Assembly (NCBI RefSeq): GCF_003704095.1
Contig: NW_020845440.1
Location: 1 to 61,021, forward strand
Origin: Pocillopora damicornis
Taxonomy: Eukaryota
DNA: 61,021 nt
Direction of reading: 5' to 3'
Shown: piece by piece, positions 1 to 61,021 of the stretch
Layout: each line of letters starts with the position of its first letter
Numbering within the stretch: the stretch's first letter is position 1
Position numbers and translations under genes: made by a program
Notes under the pieces: model-generated
The model's input: the letters and a program-made list of their open reading frames with translations, nothing else
What the model was told of the DNA's origin: nothing
The model's database searches: none

Positions 1-128
1 ATAACTGTAGTGTGTGCAAGCCATCAGATGAAGCTAAGAATCCTGAAACAGCTGCCAAGCTTTGGAAACTGAGTGAAAGGCTTGTCAGGCAGATAACATT
101 AAATGATTCACAAGTTGTGGACTTGTAG
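1..128 (+). CDS. WWOX: 3' part of the terminal exon of WWOX (SDR C-terminus), on the opposite strand to exons 1-8
   Basis: Frame 3 reads NCSVCKPSDEAKNPETAAKLWKLSERLVRQITLNDSQVVDL* (TAG 126-128). This resembles the human WWOX last exon as recalled ([29 protein letters not shown]). The exon begins before the window. Confidence 0.8.
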   Translation, partial: NCSVCKPSDEAKNPETAAKLWKLSERLVRQITLNDSQVVDL

Positions 129-1083
129 TCAATGGTTGGTTGCCTTTGACTTGTTAAGGCCTAAGCCATGCTGAAAGCAGCAAGCTGCCATGATAATGGC
201 AGGTTTGTCTAGAAATACTCAAGAGCAAGTGTTTCAAGTTAAAGAACACCTGTTGTTGAAAGAGGCAACAAGAGAAAATCTCAGTTTAATGTAATACAAT
301 TGCTCAGGTGATTATAGAAATATGTTTGTGCTGACTACTGGAGGATTATCTTGCCATAAAAACTATACACAAAGTGATAGCAATATGGAAGTGCTAACTT
401 TCAAAATGCCCATTCCATGATTGTTTAGGTTTATGACAATGAAAACAAAAGAAAATATGGTTATTGGGTTCCTGAACTGAATTTTTATTAGTATTATTCT
501 CCTCAGGTGGAGCCAAAATAGATTAGTAATTCCTTCAACTTCAGCTTAGAGATTATTCAATAGTAATTTCTTGGCCCTCAACAAGTTATGAACACTGCAT
601 CAAAGGGACAAGATGGACCTTTAAAAAAACTAAACCAGACAAAGTGAATCAACATTTATTAATCACAAAGTCATAAAAATTATCATGTAATTGTTAAGTT
701 AACTGTTTGACTCTGAAACTTAATTGATCATTTTAATTGGACATTTAGATATAAGAATGCCACATGATGGTAGAACATTTTTTTTCAATGAAAATCCAAC
801 ACCATAAAGATGGAAACCAGATACAGTATTGTTACCAATATTTATTGTAAAGACAACCCATATTAAATTATTAAAACATTTTTTTTATATTTCAACTTAA
901 ATTTGGGTTTTATTTCTCTTCCTGACTTAATAAACACTGAATCCAGTTAAGTTCAACCCCAGGGGAGGGGTGGTATAGTTTACTTCACAGCTCATTCTCA
1001 GGCCATTTCTGCACTATTCCACTATCAAAGGAAAAAGTTTGTGTTTAAGATGGTAGAAATTGTCTCCACCCTTGATAATTTAC

Positions 1084-17438: not shown

Positions 17439-18989
17439 CCGTGACCAAAGCGTTTGAAAAATTAAGTTGGGAAGAACAAATTACGAAAGGCAATAAAGTT
17501 GAAAACTATGCTTTAAATGTGTGATTTGGTAGAACATAAGGAAGGGAAATCTTTTTCATGTTTAGTCCTAAAGCAAGTTTGTCCCCAAATGAAAACTGAA
17601 CTTAGATCCTTACACTTGTCAAAGACAAACTTAGCATTTTGGCAGCATATTCTTTTTATCACTCCTAGAATTGAAACCAATCGAAACCAAGCTTGTTTTG
17701 TAAAAGTCTAATTTTCGATTTCTTTCAAGTGCATGATTAATTCAAACTGAAAGTTAGTAATCCGCATTTTCCGAACTGTTGCAAAAGGAATTCTAATTTT
17801 GTGTTCCAAAGTCGTTCAAAGAAAAGTTGGAATGAGTCTGTCTTCTTGCGCTGTTTTATTCTAGCGCAACAACTGTTTCAGTTTATCAAAAGCTGTCTTT
17901 GATCCTTGCTGCCTTGAAACGAAGCGATTATACTTTCAGTGTACTATACTCTTGGTGCAGTGTGTATCAGCTTTCAGTTATAATGCAAAGTTTTTTAGCG
18001 GACAAACAAATACAGCTTCATCTCCATGTTCTGTCAGGCAACTTGGTCAACATTCAAATTTTTTTACCTTCGATTTCACAGTGAGGTATCACTATATTCA
18101 CAGACAATAGCAGGTGACTCGAAGCGAAACATATCATCACTATGCGATACTTCTGATACTACACTGGCTTCGTTTTCTCAACAATCACAGAAAATGTGGG
18201 TTTTATTTTACAAAGATTAAAGGCAGACTCAGCTCCTGCCGTCATGTTTTTTTAGTTTTGCGGCTCTCTTCCACGTGGATTAGATATTTAAGGTGAGGAA
18301 TTATTGCAAGAAATTCAGTTTTTATTTGTATTCGAAACGCTATTTATAGATATGTCAAACAATCCGATATAATCATTAAAACGGGGCTAATTTGCGAGAT
18401 TAGAAACAAATTTCCATTTGCTATTAACTGAAAATCAACCCATTAGCTGCTTATTTTCATAAAGCGAGAAAGAAGCTGTAAGCTAATAAAATATTCCCAA
18501 GAAAATCTACTTCTGATAAGCGTCAAGCTCTAAGTGCTTGATTTTTTTAAAAACAGGCGGAGAGTTTTTGCCAAGTTCCATTCGTTTCGTTTGAGGCTTT
18601 CACTGACGAGTATAGCTACAGAGGTTGCCTTTTTATATTCTTGGTGCTAAAATCCCAAGTGGAGTTTCATACCTTTTGAATCGGTCCTTGTCAAGGGCAT
18701 GTTAAGTGCTTCTTAAGTCTGTGCACCTTTGAAAATTGAATTCGTTTGAGTAAACCTTTCAGATTTCAAACCGACCAAAAATTATCCGTCGGTTACTTAG
18801 TCACTTGATTTGGAGAATATTTTGAAACAGTTTTGGTCGTAAATGGTCGCCATTTGATGTGAATTCTCCCTTTAAGATATAGCTGTCTGTTTCAAACTCT
18901 TACAGAAAGAATGAAAAATCTGTTTAGTTTTTCCAACTGAAGTCCTATATTATTCGTGATCGCTCTTGATTGCTAGTGAAATCAAATGT

Positions 18990-19500
18990 CTTTTTCGCGC
19001 GGACATTTTAGTAGGCTTAACGCCTTTCAATTTACGAATCAGTATTTGCAATCTCTTTGTTTATTTCTCATTCCCTTTTCAGTTTGGTGAATATTCGGCT
19101 AAAACTGACCATCTCAACTTCTTTAAGCAGGCCCACCGCCACGAAAAAGACACTCTGACCCATCAAATCTCTAGCTATATAGAAGCCAAAAAAATTCCAA
19201 AAAGAGAAAAAAGCCCTAAAAACAACTACAATAATGATACTGAGGACTTTTCTGTATTTCCTTTTGCCCTCTGCTTTCGCCCTTGCATGAAATTCTCTCA
19301 GATGGAAAAAGACTCGAACAACAATTCGTCGTTTTATCGTTGCGATGGTAAATTCGAATTCATTTCTTAAATAAATCCGGTTATGTTCGCCATTCGAAAA
19401 AGGCACTTTCGAGTTGCATTTATTGAGTTGCTGCTTTCGAGAATAAAATTTTCAAGAAGCTGAGGAAAAAGAGAGCAAACTATTTAGATTCAGACGGAAC
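18990..19500 (+). pseudogene. frameshifted, partly deleted paralog of the neighbouring GPCR
   Basis: Fragments in different frames: ADILVGL (TM2-like), FKQAHRHEKDTLTHQIS (vs YKQARRHEKSILTHQVS), KREKSPK, NPVMFAIRKRHFRVAFIELLL (vs NPIIYTVRNRHFRVSFIEMLL) and EAEEKESKLFRFRR (vs EAEENERKLFRFRQ). Confidence 0.85.
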
Positions 19501-19890
19501 GGAAGAGAGAGACCAAATCCCAACATCTGCTTCAAAAGGTTACGTGAGCACTTAAGCCATCGTCGCCACGCAACAGTCACTGTAAATAATTATATAAAGG
19601 CTGTCTCTCCAAATAAATCGACTTTCGAAGCAGGGAGAATAAGGAAATACCACTGTATACACTGCACTATGCAAGAGTCTCAGGAAGCTCTGGGGTCTTG
19701 AATTTATCAGTGATGGTCCGAGTCGAAGGGGAGAGGGGAGGGGGGTGACAATTTGGCAGCGACTTTTGATAAAGTCCACCAGGGAGCGGCGAGCAATTTG
19801 TCCGTTTGCAACAACATTTGGATGTTAGGAGTAGCTATACCCAAGTGAATGTCAGATTTAAAAGTTAGGGAGTGATTACAATTAGTCTTT

Positions 19891-19970
19891 GGCTCTCAAG
19901 ATCAATACCAACCGTACAGTTCAAAAGTCAGGCTCTCAAGATCAATACCAACCATACAGTTCAAAAGTCA
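19891..19970 (+). repeat. 40-bp tandem duplication
   Basis: ggctctcaagatcaataccaacc(g/a)tacagttcaaaagtca twice, with one mismatch. Confidence 0.95.
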
Positions 19971-20667
19971 GGGAAGGACAATACGTCAGCGAGTGTCACA
20001 ATCAAAAGTCAGGGGAGGGGGCTTGAATTGTTTCAATGATCCCGAAAATCAGTCTTAAGGGAGTAGCAATTTGTTTCTCGGTTTCCATGTCAAAGGACAG
20101 TGGAGAGGAAATTGTCGATGACGATCAGAATCAAACGTTAGAGGTATAAAAATGTTTTAAAACAATGTGTTTCTGTTTGTCTTAATTTTCTTAACTTTAT
20201 TGACTAATCCACTATACACCGAGCACTTTTTCATTTTCTTTTTATTAATTGTATGTCATAAAACAGTTGACCATCATATATTCTTCCAAGATCAGTTCTA
20301 TAAATTGCTCCATGTTTACTTTACTTTCCATGATTTTCCTTTACAGGCATGTTCTCTTGGCGGGCGCTAATTGCAAACCTTCTGAATTTTGGGTATGGTC
20401 TTCGTCTCACGAGTCCGAATTTCCTAACTTAAAAGACACTGGGCAAAGCTTTAAATAAACAACAGTTTGCCAAGGCTCATAAGACAAATGCAAGTCCTTC
20501 ACTACAATTACCCGAGTGATGGAAAAGCTAGTGTTAATTATACCAGTTAATTAGTAAGTTTTTTTAATTTGTTCCAACAATTTCCATCAATGTTTGTTAT
20601 CTAAACAGCATGTATTGCTCGCAGGGTATCTTGGCTCCACTTTATAAAATGATTTTGGCAATTAATT

Positions 20668-23479
20668 TTATATGTGGATGTGGAAATTACTGCAAGAATA
20701 AAAGAAATTAAGATGTTGAGTGATGCTAATGGCATGATAGAATTGAAATCTTCGGCATGATTGCTTTTCGTTGGGTGCCGTGCGCTTTAATATTTGCGCT
20801 TTGGAAGGGACTAGCACAATGAAACAGCGCTTTGACTTACTTCATGAACTCGGGTGATCTTGCGATTACGTTTTCGAACTCTGAATAAGATAAGAATCCA
20901 TCCTCATCAATATCGGCCTCTTTTAGTAACTTGAAGGAAGAATAAACATGAGATAAATATTATTTTTTGGCTGTCGTCACTGTAATCACATGCACCTGCC
21001 CAACATAAATTCATTGAAAAAACAAAACAAAACTAAAGATTTGCAAACGAAGGCTTTGACTGAAAACACTTCATTCGTCGTTTTGGGCGAAGATCATTTG
21101 TAGGAAGAGAGATGAATTGATTCATGGATTTAAAGTTAGCAAGTAATGCGTGAAATTTTGAATATTATACCTCATCTGAAACAAACTCCATCTCTTCATC
21201 AGTAAGTTCCTTTGCTGTGATAGCTCTCAACGTTTGTTTGAGATCTTCCTTGCCGAGGTAATCATCTTGGTCAAAATCTCGAGAAAAAGAAAGAAAGGAA
21301 GTGAATGAGGAAAAAGGGTTATGCACGTCAAGGAAACATAAAACCCATAGAATGAAAGAGAGAAAGTGTTACAGCCCGGTTATAACTAAAACATTCAAAT
21401 GAAAATAGCCACGAAGGGTAAAATTTAGAAACGTAGTTAATTAAAGAGAAGATCTTTACCAAATATCCTGAATGCATATTTTGCTTTGAGCTCTATAGGA
21501 GCCTGTGAAAACCAAAAAAAAGGAAAAAGTTTAGTGCATCGTGCCTCTGCTCCAAAGGAGAAAAATTGATCATATAAACATTTAGATCTTGATTTGATTG
21601 GCTTTCATATTCATTTGTTGCTATGGATGTAGAATCTGGGTTGGTGTTAATAGACTCTTCAATAGTGCTGTGAGAAACTCGACCCTGTTCGACTAATCAA
21701 AATGCAGAGGTGACGTCTCATCGCGACAATCAAGAAATCATTTCTGTGTTCAAATTCGCCTGGTCCAAACAATTTCTTTTCAATGTCTCGAAACGATCGC
21801 TTTTAAGGAACATTCCACTGAGGTTTGCTGCACCCTCGCTCTCCTTATTCCAATTATCAACAGCCGTACGCGTTTATGTTACCGTCATAATGGTACTAAG
21901 CTGTAATAGTACTCCTAAATAGATACGTCTACAAAGAAAACTTACAGATTCACTGAGCACTGACATCATGTTTAAGAAATCGTCGAATGTCAGGCTGCCA
22001 TCTCCACTAGGGGAAAACACTTCACAGATTCGTCGCCTGAAGGGATTCTCCTATTATTTGAAAGAAATATTAATATAATATCTGGAATCTTGAAAAATTA
22101 ACATACCAAATTTAGCTCAGGAGCATTCATGATCGACATGGAGAACTTTGGTCAGTAGTAAGTCAAACGTCGGGCATGCGAAATTGATTCAACTTTGGCC
22201 AGCCACGCGCCAAATAAAATTTTAAAGGAACCTTCGACAAAAAAAAAGGGATACACAAGAACTATGAATGCAAAGTTTATCCAAAGTTTATTGGTTAACT
22301 AAGCCAACTTGGATTTTACAACCCGAAAGCACGATTTTGGGCCTCTATTTTGGCCGCCTTTCAGATTTTCTAACGTTCGCGCACGTGCAGATGCAGTTTA
22401 AACCAGTTCTGTGTACTTTGTTCGTAATTCATCATATTTAAATTAGAGTACGAAAAATAACGGCTCTCAAAAAAAAATTAAATAATAATAAAAACTGAAC
22501 TAGTGGCTTGAAAAACATTTCCCATATAAGACCCCTTCCCTCCCCCCGCCGGTTAATTCATTGTTACTTATTGGCTCACCTTGAGTTCTGGTAGTTGCTG
22601 GAGAAATTTGTATTTCAGTTTTGGCTGAACATCAAGTTCTGTAAAATCTTCTGGTATAAGGTCTGTATTTAAATCTCGATATCGCCGGTGAATCCTGATA
22701 ATGAATGAACTTGTGATTTTTAAGAGAATTACAATTATAAGAGAACTGTAACAACAACACTCGACCACGACAACAACAGGAACAACACGAACAACAAATA
22801 CATCCGAACTTTTCTCTATCTCAAGTGATTTTGATACATTCGAATGAAAGATAGTCAGCTCTCCTGATACGACTAGTTTTGAAAACTATATGGCTGCGAT
22901 TCAACAACAGAGCTCCAGTGATCCACGTTCATTTATAACTGAAACTGAGTTTGCGAGGATAAACACAATCCGAAAAAGAACAACAATGGTTAATTTTAGG
23001 TGAAGAGACCAGTGAAGATGCCGAATGAGAGAACTGGAAAATGTTTGCTAAATTTTCTTAATTAATGTGATGATAGAAATATGGCTTTCTCACTGATCAT
23101 TTGAAATTATAATGCGCTCTGCCTTCCCCACATCACAAGTGACCATACCAACTGAAAACACTAAATGAAGATTGAAAAGTATTAATCGCAAATGATGGTA
23201 TGAGCCTACATTGAATTCTAACGCAAACAGTCCATAAGGTGTGATTATACAAATCATTTATAAATCAAAATAAAATCAGTTGAAACACATACCTTAAAAT
23301 ATCAGCCCGATTGAAGTATGTACAGTCCTAAACGATAAAAATAACAAAAATAGGTTATTAAGAGATCGGGAATGATGATTCCGCGAGGAATCGCTTAAAA
23401 TGAAATAATGACATGCGAATTTATAAACCTGATAGTCTTCGAGCTGATCTTCTGTAAAAGCTGCTTGCTTGTTTCCCAT
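20668..23479 (-). CDS. calcium- and integrin-binding family protein (CIB2/CIB3-like EF-hand)
   Basis: Exons 23479-23429 ([17 protein letters not shown]), 23327-23293 ([11 protein letters not shown]), 22694-22580, 22050-21946 ([13 protein letters not shown]...[13 protein letters not shown]), 21502-21460 ([14 protein letters not shown]), 21277-21171 (EF loop [13 protein letters not shown]), 20929-20841 (EF loop [13 protein letters not shown]...SPEF) and 20689-20668 (NFHIHI*). Gly2 fits N-myristoylation. Confidence 0.95.
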
Positions 23480-58187: not shown

Positions 58188-61021
58188 CTATGGTATTATC
58201 CAGTCCTTCAGCTCATCTTCAAAACTTTTGTTGACACAGTACAAAAAGGCAGTCTTATCTACTTGACGGCCAGGCATGATATTGAACACATGTCGTCGGT
58301 AATGACGATCTGGTGTGTGCATGTAGTTGTCTAGGTAACCAGGGCATTCGGTGGAGGGGCACGCAGGTCCACAGTGAAACTTTACAAAGGGGAAACTCCT
58401 CTTGCAAATCCCCTCTACCATGGAGTACACTTCGCACAAGACATCAGAAGGCTTCTTTCCACGACTATTGCTGGAAAGTAATGGAATATGTTGTTTTACG
58501 TTAGTGGAGAAAAGGTTTAGAAAAAAATTTGCAACTTTGTTGCAAGCTGGCACATTACCAACCTGGCCATAAGAATTTTCACTTAAGCCAAGTCACTTGC
58601 GTAATGACTATTTTCAAGGCTACAAGTCATTTAGTATAAAGAAGATTCTGGTTAGAGAAACTCAGAAACACACACACGATCCCCGAGCAAAACTATGTAC
58701 ATTCTCGCAAACAACCCACAGTATCATTTCTGTTAGCCACCAAACATTATGAAAAGTCTAAGTCCCCTAAGTTTTTGAGGAAAGGGTGTACAACTACCTG
58801 GTACTGAATGTAACTTCAATAACACCCTCTTTCTTCATCAGCTTAAGCCTGTAGGGCTGCCGAGAACTCATCCAGAACTTTCCAACATCTCTGAACACAA
58901 CAGTTGCACCATTGGCAAACTCCACCTTACTTTTCTTGTGGGCACGAGACAACAGGCGATGGAACAAGGGTTCTGGTAGGAACCTCTCGAAAAACACCAA
59001 GAACTTTTTATCTCTCTTGTCATCATACCATGCTGGGTTGCATACATCTTGAGACTTCGGTAACAAGGATGGAACAAAGTGAGTTGGCTGGAGCCTCTCT
59101 TTGTCTCGTAAGGTAACAATTTTGACTTTGGTGTTGGTTAATGGGCAGATCAAATCGTACTTTTCAAGAAATGCACTCATGGCTTCTTCATTTTCCTTTA
59201 CGTTGGAAATGATGCTGATTAGGAGTGGTTTTGTTAGCAGTCCCTTTTCCTGGAGAAGTCTCCAGTCACTCCTCAATCCTCTCGTCTGGGTCATTTGAGG
59301 GGATGACGTGACCAGCTTGGTAATGATATCCACCAGAATTTCTGGTTTGAGTAGAACCCAGTCGGACAGGTCTTTATCTTTGGCAATGTATATTATCAGG
59401 CCTTGTTCGTGGAAGTACTTCAAGGTTTCTTCAGACCGGTTGGTGTGAATTATGTTACCAAATGCCCATGGAAACTCTCTCAGTGTGACACAGTATCTGG
59501 CAACCTTCCTTTACCTTAACTGGATGATCGCATCTTGTATTCTTATCCATGACAAAGGAATTTTGTCATCTGTAGTTGGCTTGCATTCCTCAGCAGCAGC
59601 CATGATTTTGATTCGAAGCATTTGAACTCCAACATCATTATCCCCCTTTGAGTTCTCAACTGGAAAGAAGATCAGATCTTCATCTTCGTTAACAACCAGC
59701 TCATCACAGTAGGATGTCCAAAGAATTTGTTTTAACTTGCTATTAAAGTTTTGCATGTGGTTCTTGTCTATGTGTTCACAATGTGTTCCAACAAGGAAGA
59801 TTGGTGTTTTTGGTTGTACATGACCACAGACAGACTCAAACCAAACGAGAAGCCTCTCGGCCTTTAAATTCTGAAATTCCTCTAGTGCAAAATCAGACAT
59901 GTTGAATACAACGACATAAACAGCCTGGTTCTTTAGAAACATGTGATGATAAGCATAATATTCTTCGTCACCTGCAAAATCCAGGATCTTCATTTTCAGA
60001 AAGGGATATTTCTTGTTCAGCGCAGTTTGTATCATTTTTGTGTTGATTTCACCGTTTCCAATAAGCGCAATTGTCATGAAACTGTTAAAGGGGTTCACAA
60101 ATTGTGTTTTACTGCCGTCTGAATTGCTGCAAAACAATTCCTGGTAGAAGGTTAAGCCCACGTATGCAGGAAATGTTATGATAAAAAAATAAATTGCTAT
60201 ACGTGGTGTAGTATGAGCTTGATATGCTACTTTTATGTGATAATAGGTCCAAACGATCAACAGTGCTATTTGAGGTACTGATCCCAGTGATCTGTCCTTT
60301 TTAATAGCTGATTTAGTAACATTTCTGACGTAGTTTGTGTCCAAAATGATAAGTGGGAAGTCAACCACGAAAATTGCAAAAATACTAGTGATAATTCTGT
60401 CATTACTTCGGGTACAGGCTGTGAGCTTCGCTAAAGTTTCCGCATCTTTAATTTCATGACTAGGTGACGCTACTGAAAGTTCTATAGATGCATGCTCCCA
60501 GAAACAGAGTCCTTCTAGTCTCCAGAAGGACCTTGCAACAATAAAGCCAGAAATTAATCCGATCAAGATTGATAAAGGTAACCGACAAAAACATAGGAAC
60601 TTCATCAAGGTTTGATTCCTGATCAGTCGACCTGTAACACAGGGTAGTCGTTGCGGTCCGATGAAAAGGAACAAGGTAACGAATGCAGTACCTGCAACTG
60701 TGCTCAACATGAGAAATTCGCGAGTACTTGCAAACTCTAAGTAACTGTTGTTAAAGGGACATATCATTATAGCCGAATATAACCCAATCAATAACCCTCG
60801 GCGGTTCAAGATGAAAGCCACAGTAGTGAGTGTCAATCTGATGTCATGACTCTCGAAGAAATTCACACAAATCGGAAACATAAGATAACCATGATAAATG
60901 TAGTAAAATAAGAGGTATTTCACAGGATATCTGTATATTGTCCCAATGACGAATAAAAGTGTTATTACAATTCCACAGAAATACAAATAAAGCCGCAGAA
61001 GACTTGTTGTCATCATGAACT
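58188..61021 (-). CDS. ROCO-family protein, 5'-partial: multi-pass hydrophobic region, Roc G3-G5 and COR; one in-frame TAA at 59511-59513
   Basis: Roc motifs ILDFAGDEEYYAYHHMFL...VYVVVFN, WFESV, PIFLVGTH and FFPVEN. COR motifs IPLSWIRIQ, LKYFHEQGLIIY, WVLLKPEILVDIITKLV, HFVPSLL and FLPEPLFHRLL. The long exon runs to a donor at 58798, and the last exon is 58470-58188 (Cys/His-rich). Confidence 0.85.

Follow-up and report, generated by a model that had tools for sequence, protein, structure and literature searches.

Small GTPases are textbook examples of soluble or peripheral switches. To our knowledge, the characterised ROCO proteins are soluble and have a contiguous Roc GTPase domain. The ROCO proteins of Ectocarpus carry a C-terminal domain "homologous to transmembrane proteins", which is not inserted in Roc (PMC4104024). 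A full-text search of the open-access subset returned no published account in which transmembrane helices divide a Roc domain or the domain of any other small GTPase, and the architecture reported here is apparently undescribed. We analyzed a stretch of 61,021 nucleotides from the coral Pocillopora damicornis (NCBI RefSeq assembly GCF_003704095.1, contig NW_020845440.1, positions 1 to 61,021), hereafter the window. The window is an entire contig (C2075), ending at position 61021, of an assembly of 234 Mb in 4393 contigs. Taking the evidence as a whole, we consider it likely that the window contains four-fifths of a coral gene, from its 3' end, that encodes a polytopic-membrane ROCO protein, in which a split Roc domain encloses a membrane bundle, that this arrangement characterizes an ancient clade, and that the bundle acts as a sensor for cell-death or immune signalling.

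The minus strand of the window contains an open reading frame (ORF) of 501 amino acids (59511..61016), which stays open up to the contig end at 61021. A sequence-only reading of the window had pointed to about 290 hydrophobic residues running in one frame into DFAG, LVGTH, FFPVEN and a COR domain, and all of the segments that it listed are found in the translation of this ORF. No GxxxxGK[ST] motif occurs within the 345 residues preceding DFAG inside the window, as that reading had noted; it had proposed either that the bundle lies inside the GTPase fold with G1 and G2 beyond the window, or that the P-loop is lost. A database search retrieved an 859-residue protein (P0227) that differs from the translated window exon at a single residue; its gene lies on two contigs from coral metagenomes, L023 and L024. 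These contigs share 99.7-99.8% identity with the window over 4.1-4.3 kb with no frameshift, extend 816 and 648 nt past its end, and contain the 859-codon frame unbroken in genomic DNA. P0227 has a P-loop, GDPRVGKTS, at residues 39-47 and a switch-I threonine, Thr64, in QRTQGID. Both fall within the 118 N-terminal codons (G1/G2) that are missing from the assembly, at the point where the ORF runs open into the contig end. The window, being the whole contig, cannot itself be extended past 61021; it is in L023 and L024 that the GxxxxGK(T/S) motif and the switch-I threonine are found. The P-loop is present in the same uninterrupted genomic ORF, which disposes of its proposed loss and supports the first proposal.

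Numbered on the 859-codon ORF and read on the minus strand, the first part of the long coding exon (59514..61021) consists of codons 119-620 and encodes the transmembrane (TM) insert, a linker and the G3-G5 half of Roc. The insert comprises residues 124-412 (60138..61004). From hydropathy and an AlphaFold2 (AF2) model of the insert, eight helices are predicted: TM1 (61004-60936), TM2 (60923-60858), TM3 (60848-60753), TM4 (60725-60660), TM5 (60614-60531), TM6 (60401-60339), TM7 (60287-60231) and TM8 (60212-60138). Between TM5 and TM6 lies a hydrophilic loop (60530-60402) peculiar to the subfamily of the window gene. A return "neck", made of a strand (MTIALIGNG) and a helix (60009..60092) according to AF2 and alignment to paralogs, leads from TM8 to Roc beta3 and the G3 motif LKMKILDFAGD (59967..59999), which aligns with LVLNVWDFAGR of LRRK2. 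The G3 residues D465-F-A-G468 lie at 59981-59970, the G4-equivalent IFLVGTHCEH, with THCE opposite THLD of LRRK2, at 59772..59801, and IFFPVENSK of the Roc G5 region at 59646..59672. The COR domain follows directly after Roc. It covers COR-A and the start of COR-B, residues 606-858 and the first two bases of codon 859 (58798..59558), and is assigned from Pfam COR-A and from the LRRK2 Roc-COR match of a paralog model. The frame then continues across a predicted 327-nt GT..AG intron of phase 2 (58471..58797), whose donor, AG/GTAGTT, is found at the same position in contig L027, into a predicted last coding exon (58188..58470) of ~93 codons and a stop. This exon encodes a Cys-rich C-terminal module that matches the C-terminal extension of homologs P0025, P0067, P0044 and P0003. 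The intron donor overlaps the TAG at 58796-58794, where the unspliced frame ends. The two window exons were searched separately, and their junction was checked for frame by translation.

The Pfam Roc profile matches exon residues 333-413 at profile positions 49-118 only, i.e. from G3 onward (E 1.3e-8). Pfam COR-A matches the next ORF, 58794..59423 (E 3.4e-6 for the window piece), and P0227 (E 1.3e-7), in both cases below the gathering score, which several homologs exceed. Two candidate features were rejected. A supposed degenerate P-loop, IALIGNGEINTK, just before G3 corresponds in the paralogs to the linker helix IEKxALNFQKL, the same motif with which the neck aligns, and the true P-loop lies upstream. 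The stretch 59424-59510 is not a short intron; it is coding, and the stop that precedes it is a single-base difference from L023 and L024.

The split is also seen in three TM-class paralogs of the same genome, two on contig C4151 (L005, L004) and one on C2489 (L006), each in a single ORF. Their order is a P-loop, CL(I/V)LGDxxVGKTSL, followed by switch I, EPxTxG(V/I)E, ~330-350 hydrophobic residues and the G3 half, with a C-terminal part made up of LKLKILDF(A/S/G)GD, LVGTH, FPVE and COR. The P-loop GxxxxGK[ST] is present in all 113 of the 113 aligned family members, and its distance from DxxG is ~370-440 residues in the tabulated TM-class homologs. Fourteen sequences ranging from sponge to amphioxus all retain G, K and T in the P-loop, the threonine of switch I, D and G in the DxxG motif, and GTH. 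Pfam Roc matches family members in two complementary stretches (profile positions 2-47 and 49-119), which are ~350 residues apart.

To this the AF2 model of the complete paralog L005 (39-sequence alignment; pLDDT 66 overall and mostly 75-90 in the Roc and COR-A parts; pTM 0.59) adds a structural view, in which both halves join into one G domain; the sequence-only reading had suggested such a check. Whole Rab structures (166-177 residues) align over 164-173 residues with the L005 model within the range 60..580, with a root-mean-square deviation of ~3.4 Å and Z scores of 16.6-17.4. Therefore, the N-terminal piece must supply beta1, the P-loop, alpha1 and beta2. The L005 model also superimposes on the Roc-COR structures of LRRK2 and LRRK1 (Z 22-24; LRRK2 Z 24 over 322 residues) and on archaeal and bacterial RocCOR structures (Z 18-22). 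The G3-G4 region of the window aligns with LRRK2 residues 1383-1471 (DKRKRDLVLNVWDFAGR...LVGTHLD), which places the insertion in the beta2-beta3 loop. In the predicted structure, the two Roc pieces are shown to be complementary halves of one six-stranded G domain and not two domains. In this model, the chain exits the G fold after beta2, past G1 and the switch-I Thr, runs through the predicted membrane bundle, and re-enters just before beta3 and G3, from where it continues into COR.

The insert has a mean Kyte-Doolittle hydropathy of 0.69, compared with -0.33 for the rest of the protein. On the same scale, the best 19-residue stretches of the eight window segments score 2.36, 1.24, 1.41, 2.18, 2.08, 2.27, 1.08 and 1.76, and mean hydropathy over 39 homologs displays eight peaks. 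The L005 model contains eight long helices, and AF2 of the window insert alone (114-sequence alignment) gives a confident helical bundle (pLDDT 79, pTM 0.78), in which beta strands on both flanks form the neck toward the G domain. Lysine plus arginine counts sum to 6.0 in loops 2-3, 4-5 and 6-7, versus 3.1 in loops 1-2, 3-4, 5-6 and 7-8. This positive-inside bias fits an N-in/C-in topology with both Roc halves in the cytosol. In genomic DNA, the hydrophobic region, which the sequence-only reading wished to see confirmed as exonic by RNA-seq, is exonic, and it is predicted to be helical as well as hydrophobic. The fold found no counterpart in our searches: the insert matches no Pfam family, Foldseek against the Protein Data Bank gave a best E of 0.8, VIA in its wide form gave a best Z of 7.2, which is below the noise that the tool states for helical bundles, and two inserts tried against the ESM Atlas returned no usable match. 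Comparison of the two halves of the insert with hhalign gave no internal 4+4 repeat (probability 0.1). As a side observation, the strands that enter and leave the bundle are alike in the subfamily of the window gene: residues 96-108 of P0227 (DVQVALIGTGRQN) resemble residues 432-444 (FMTIALIGNGEIN), the latter corresponding to window positions 60042-60080. This likeness is absent from other subfamilies and may be due to chance.

The insert is the most variable region of the protein, with 83% identity versus 98% among near-alleles and 41-45% versus 66-87% among more distant paralogs. Few of its residues are invariant across phyla. Comparison of the insert of L023 with that of L026 gave a ratio of nonsynonymous to synonymous substitution rates (dN/dS) of 0.54 and an in-frame indel of seven codons, and the insert still looks coding by these measures. 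Variability in this part of the protein is as expected of a sensor. We also observed that between L023 and L026, which are orthologs or alleles of the window gene, the half with the N-terminus and insert has a synonymous divergence (dS) of 0.14-0.22, and the C-terminal Roc and COR half one of 0.013-0.017, a difference of ~10-fold. This mosaic pattern suggests mosaic alleles, recombination or gene conversion, or a membrane module under diversifying pressure.

To get a broader picture of the family, we scanned 1.84 billion cluster representatives with the window exon and found 864 relatives, of which the best 150 were used to describe classes. In ~55 of these 150 clusters, G1 and G3 are 370-440 residues apart with 5-9 hydrophobic peaks between them; in ~40, the soluble-insert class, the distance is 110-270 residues with zero hydrophobic peaks. 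More than 100 homologs share the order G1-G2, ~8 TM helices, G3-G5 and COR, so that the search which the sequence-only reading recommended for the same G1-TM-G3 architecture found many examples. The members include the sponge Oscarella lobularis, the corals Stylophora, Acropora, Desmophyllum and Orbicella, the limpet Patella, the echinoderms Asterias and Amphiura, the hemichordates Ptychodera and Glandiceps, and the amphioxus species Branchiostoma floridae and B. lanceolatum. The closest named relatives of the window protein are from Stylophora pistillata. Nearly all of the database labels read "uncharacterized" or "hypothetical", and some coral entries are named as kinases (pats1, roco5) though no kinase domain is present.

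A maximum-likelihood tree was calculated from the Roc halves and COR, with the insert excluded. All 46 of the 46 TM-class rows fall in one clade (SH-like approximate likelihood ratio support 98), with three TM-poor rows nested among them. Inside it, bilaterians (99) and cnidarians (98) each form a clade of their own, and the sponge forms a branch. The other soluble-insert proteins lie across the root, bar P0073, which is joined to the TM clade by a weak (62) branch. Therefore, the insertion looks like a single early-metazoan event, and the aligned sequences show the split arrangement as one ancient clade. A few members have the insert missing or cut to ~2-6 helices (P0055, P0085 and P0054, and P0053, which lacks it exactly). 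These bundle-poor members nest within the coral TM clade and represent either deletions acquired secondarily or faulty gene models; in the former case, they would offer natural controls that lack the bundle. Several paralogs, three or four in some cases, lie on single contigs in other coral genomes, forming tandem families. The P. damicornis assembly holds at least four TM-class loci; those at C4151:296512-300060 (L005) and 312297-315899 (L004) are ~15 kb apart, and runs of N occur inside the ORFs of L004 and L006. It also contains two tandem soluble paralogs (L021, L022; C1630:12246-15383 and 18876-22004), which have a ~130-residue, Ser/Pro/Gly-rich and apparently disordered insert at the same beta2-beta3 site. 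In this Roc subfamily, the beta2-beta3 loop is generally prone to insertions.

The C-terminal parts of homologs from other phyla indicate where the signal might go. Pfam Death domains, at E 1e-9 to 2e-11, are found in the sponge Oscarella (P0158) and in amphioxus (P0123, P0157, P0341), a CARD in P0176 (3e-11), and a complete caspase domain in P0127, Branchiostoma floridae LOC118405396 (E 9.5e-57). A limpet homolog is called a "Death domain-containing protein" in UniProt, the name alone being the basis. A Cys-rich C-terminal module of ~93-95 residues (FHCGPACP...CPGY...RRHVFN...YC), which is common to corals and other phyla and conserved from sponge to amphioxus, sits between COR and the Death, CARD or caspase domains; it matches no Pfam family. 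Pfam gave no LRR, ankyrin or kinase matches in P0227, L005 or the 16 homologs scanned. The remark in the sequence-only reading that no C-terminal kinase or death domain is evident therefore stands for the coral proteins, but not for the sponge and amphioxus homologs, nor for the limpet homolog by its UniProt name. Its guess at a cnidarian sensing or immune system is strengthened by the death-fold domains of the homologs, though it stays a matter of interpretation, and the restriction to cnidarians does not hold, as the family extends from sponge to amphioxus.

The function that we infer as most likely is that of a membrane sensor coupled via the Roc switch to death-fold signalling. An even number of helices would put both Roc halves in the cytosol. 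The bundle would then hang from the beta2-beta3 "interswitch" hairpin, with switch I before it and switch II after it, so that movements of TM1 versus TM8, whether caused by a ligand, a lipid or the state of the membrane, should reach both switches, or the reverse, in which case GTP would control an activity of the membrane part. The bundle would be the input of the Roc-COR switch, as a membrane-embedded sensor. The output would be cell-death or innate-immune signalling, via the fused death-fold and caspase domains in other phyla. In corals, it may proceed via COR, the Cys-rich C-terminal module or partners, with the death-fold output being recruited or replaced. Possible, though on balance doubtful, is the wider proposal that the family represents a new class of metazoan transmembrane receptor, in which a membrane signal (a ligand, a lipid, or damage caused by a pore-former or pathogen) would be converted into a nucleotide state, COR-mediated assembly, and activation of Death, CARD or caspase domains. 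The family would then be an ancient death or immune switch that ranges from sponges to amphioxus, has expanded and diversified in reef corals, and was lost from vertebrates.

Other explanations concern what the bundle does, and whether the gene and its product exist in the form described. The bundle may merely be a membrane anchor or localisation device, with the beta2-beta3 loop as a permissive site and the nucleotide cycle uncoupled from the membrane part. Since soluble relatives hold disordered inserts at this position (~130 Ser/Pro-rich residues in the C1630 paralogs, and G1-G3 gaps of 110-270 residues without a hydrophobic peak in ~40 clusters), the site tolerates unrelated inserts, and the insert being the least conserved region, with few invariant residues across phyla, would agree with such a role. 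However, one or two helices would suffice for an anchor, whereas the members of this one clade, from sponge to amphioxus, have all retained a bundle of the same size, ~300 residues and ~8 helices, and AF2 predicts from co-variation that it is compact (pTM 0.78). We regard the anchor as rather unlikely. A covalent junction between a G domain and a polytopic membrane domain also brings to mind a GTP-gated channel or transporter, with Roc as the gate or motor of a pore in the bundle, as in FeoB. The top rows of the fold searches are indeed transporters (ABCB10, MsbA, PfNT1, MCT10), but at noise level. Neither fold search gave a significant match (Foldseek E 0.8; VIA Z 7.2), no FeoB or transporter Pfam family matches, and the fusions to Death, CARD and caspase domains point instead to signalling, making a channel or transporter improbable.

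The proposal that splicing removes the hydrophobic stretch from the mature product, as an intron or "exitron", draws on the gene model P0053 (Desmophyllum pertusum OS493_003440, 499 residues), which skips the insert exactly. This model is nested deep in the TM clade, which indicates a secondary loss or a model artefact. Against splicing, ~300 codons stay open in more than 100 genes from six phyla, indels are in frame with a dN/dS of 0.54, no GT donor exists at the equivalent boundaries of paralog L004, and the insert is kept in the RefSeq models of Stylophora, Branchiostoma, Ptychodera and others; removal of the insert is thus highly improbable. As for contigs that might be transcripts, the Logan contig L027 was ruled out because it retains the intron donor, and the JGI contig L025, in which the two exons are joined in one ORF, would fit a spliced mRNA, although it has no poly(A). 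The window copy itself could be a dead gene, 5'-truncated and interrupted by a nonsense codon, encoding nothing functional whatever the family does. Its in-frame TAA at codon 621 (59511..59513, minus strand) stands where L023 and L024 have CAA (Gln), and the first 118 codons are found nowhere in the assembly. The 5' sequence of the gene is on no other contig, and only L023:1-170, a dispersed repeat, matches other contigs; it lies ~300 nt upstream of the start codon and occurs at 84-88% identity in at least four contigs (C2498, C1363, C3290, C666). The contig break inside the gene is probably due to this nearby repeat, so the 5' loss fits an assembly break. One small contig, C1364 (L018), was considered as the source of the missing 5' end and ruled out, as it holds a different soluble Roc gene. 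The TAA base apart, the window agrees with the intact ORFs at 99.7-99.8% of positions across the 4.1-4.3 kb compared and shows no frameshift, and all matches at 85% identity or more, among those listed, are 852-859 residues long, with none truncated at residue 620. The lone C-to-T difference could stem from a rare allele or from an error in sequencing: either the sequenced colony has a nonsense allele, or the assembly is wrong at this base. A dead copy is accordingly a minority possibility, though one to be taken seriously.

Several observations weigh against the reading of the protein as a split-Roc membrane sensor, or limit it. Only five of the eight window segments exceed 1.6 on the Kyte-Doolittle scale, and the three weaker ones (1.08-1.41) are aromatic-rich. 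The helix count is about eight, possibly 6-8, with both count and parity derived from hydropathy and AF2. For the full-length paralog, AF2 reached a moderate confidence (pLDDT 66), the dN/dS of 0.54 could also reflect weak constraint on the insert, and transcription and retention of the insert in mRNA are suggested by the conservation of the ORF. At the G4 position, the window sequence THCE has a Glu where THLD of LRRK2 has the base-contacting Asp. This Asp is lost in most coral members (THRG in 56 of the 87 coral-type members), whereas TH[RK]D is kept by most non-coral members, among them the named proteins from sponge, mollusc and deuterostomes (alignment A3); judged from sequence, the specificity or affinity for nucleotide in corals is uncertain. 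Pfam finds no Death, CARD or caspase domain in the window protein or the coral members, the TAA at 59513-59511 is the sole difference from L023 and L024 that would disable the window copy, and allosteric coupling between the bundle and the switches is pure inference.

If the preferred reading of a membrane sensor built into Roc is correct, threading a membrane domain between the two switch regions would link events in the membrane with a nucleotide switch, in either direction, by a new route. As a close structural relative of the LRRK2 Roc-COR core, the family could serve as a natural experiment on communication through the Roc interswitch. Given the death-domain fusions and the coral expansion with a hypervariable module, it may represent a so far unexplored branch of the cell-death and immune signalling of early animals, with a bearing on stress, disease and symbiosis in corals. 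Annotation would also gain from describing the family correctly, as copies are now "uncharacterized" or misnamed as "pats1" or "roco5" kinases.

The split-Roc family shares with ROCO proteins (LRRK1 and LRRK2, DAPK1, MFHAS1 and bacterial Roco proteins such as that of Chlorobium tepidum) a Roc domain directly followed by COR and the alignment of DFAG and LVGTH, but its Roc is interrupted between beta2 and beta3 by the ~300-residue bundle of ~8 helices. Unlike LRRK, DAPK1 and MFHAS1, it has no LRR, ankyrin or kinase domain, the G4 Asp is replaced in most coral members, and some members have C-terminal Death, CARD or caspase domains. Also related are the soluble Roc-COR proteins of corals and other invertebrates, such as the two C1630 paralogs, which belong to the same subfamily (32-33% identity in the G3-G5 half) and have the same insertion site, LVGTH and FPVEN. 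These differ in that their insert, of ~60-220 residues, is of low complexity and not hydrophobic, and in lying outside the TM clade. FeoB is a functional analogy, with a small-GTPase-like domain covalently coupled to a multi-helix membrane domain. In FeoB, an intact G domain precedes the membrane domain; in the split-Roc family, which has no FeoB Pfam match, the membrane domain lies inside the G fold. The beta2-beta3 interswitch of the Arf family relays the nucleotide state to the membrane-facing side, and G-alpha proteins illustrate that the G fold tolerates a large helical domain inserted near switch I. The moving or inserted elements of Arf, Arl, Sar1 and G-alpha are, however, soluble or amphipathic, and we know of no protein that threads a polytopic membrane domain through the interswitch. 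With STAND/NLR proteins, Apaf-1-like proteins and death receptors, the family has in common a nucleotide switch joined to an output through Death, CARD or caspase domains (in the homologs from sponge and amphioxus, and by UniProt name in the limpet), a variable putative sensor module, and tandem gene families in corals. The switch of the split-Roc family is a Ras-like GTPase in place of a STAND ATPase, and its putative sensor is a membrane bundle in place of LRR, WD40 or TNFR repeats.

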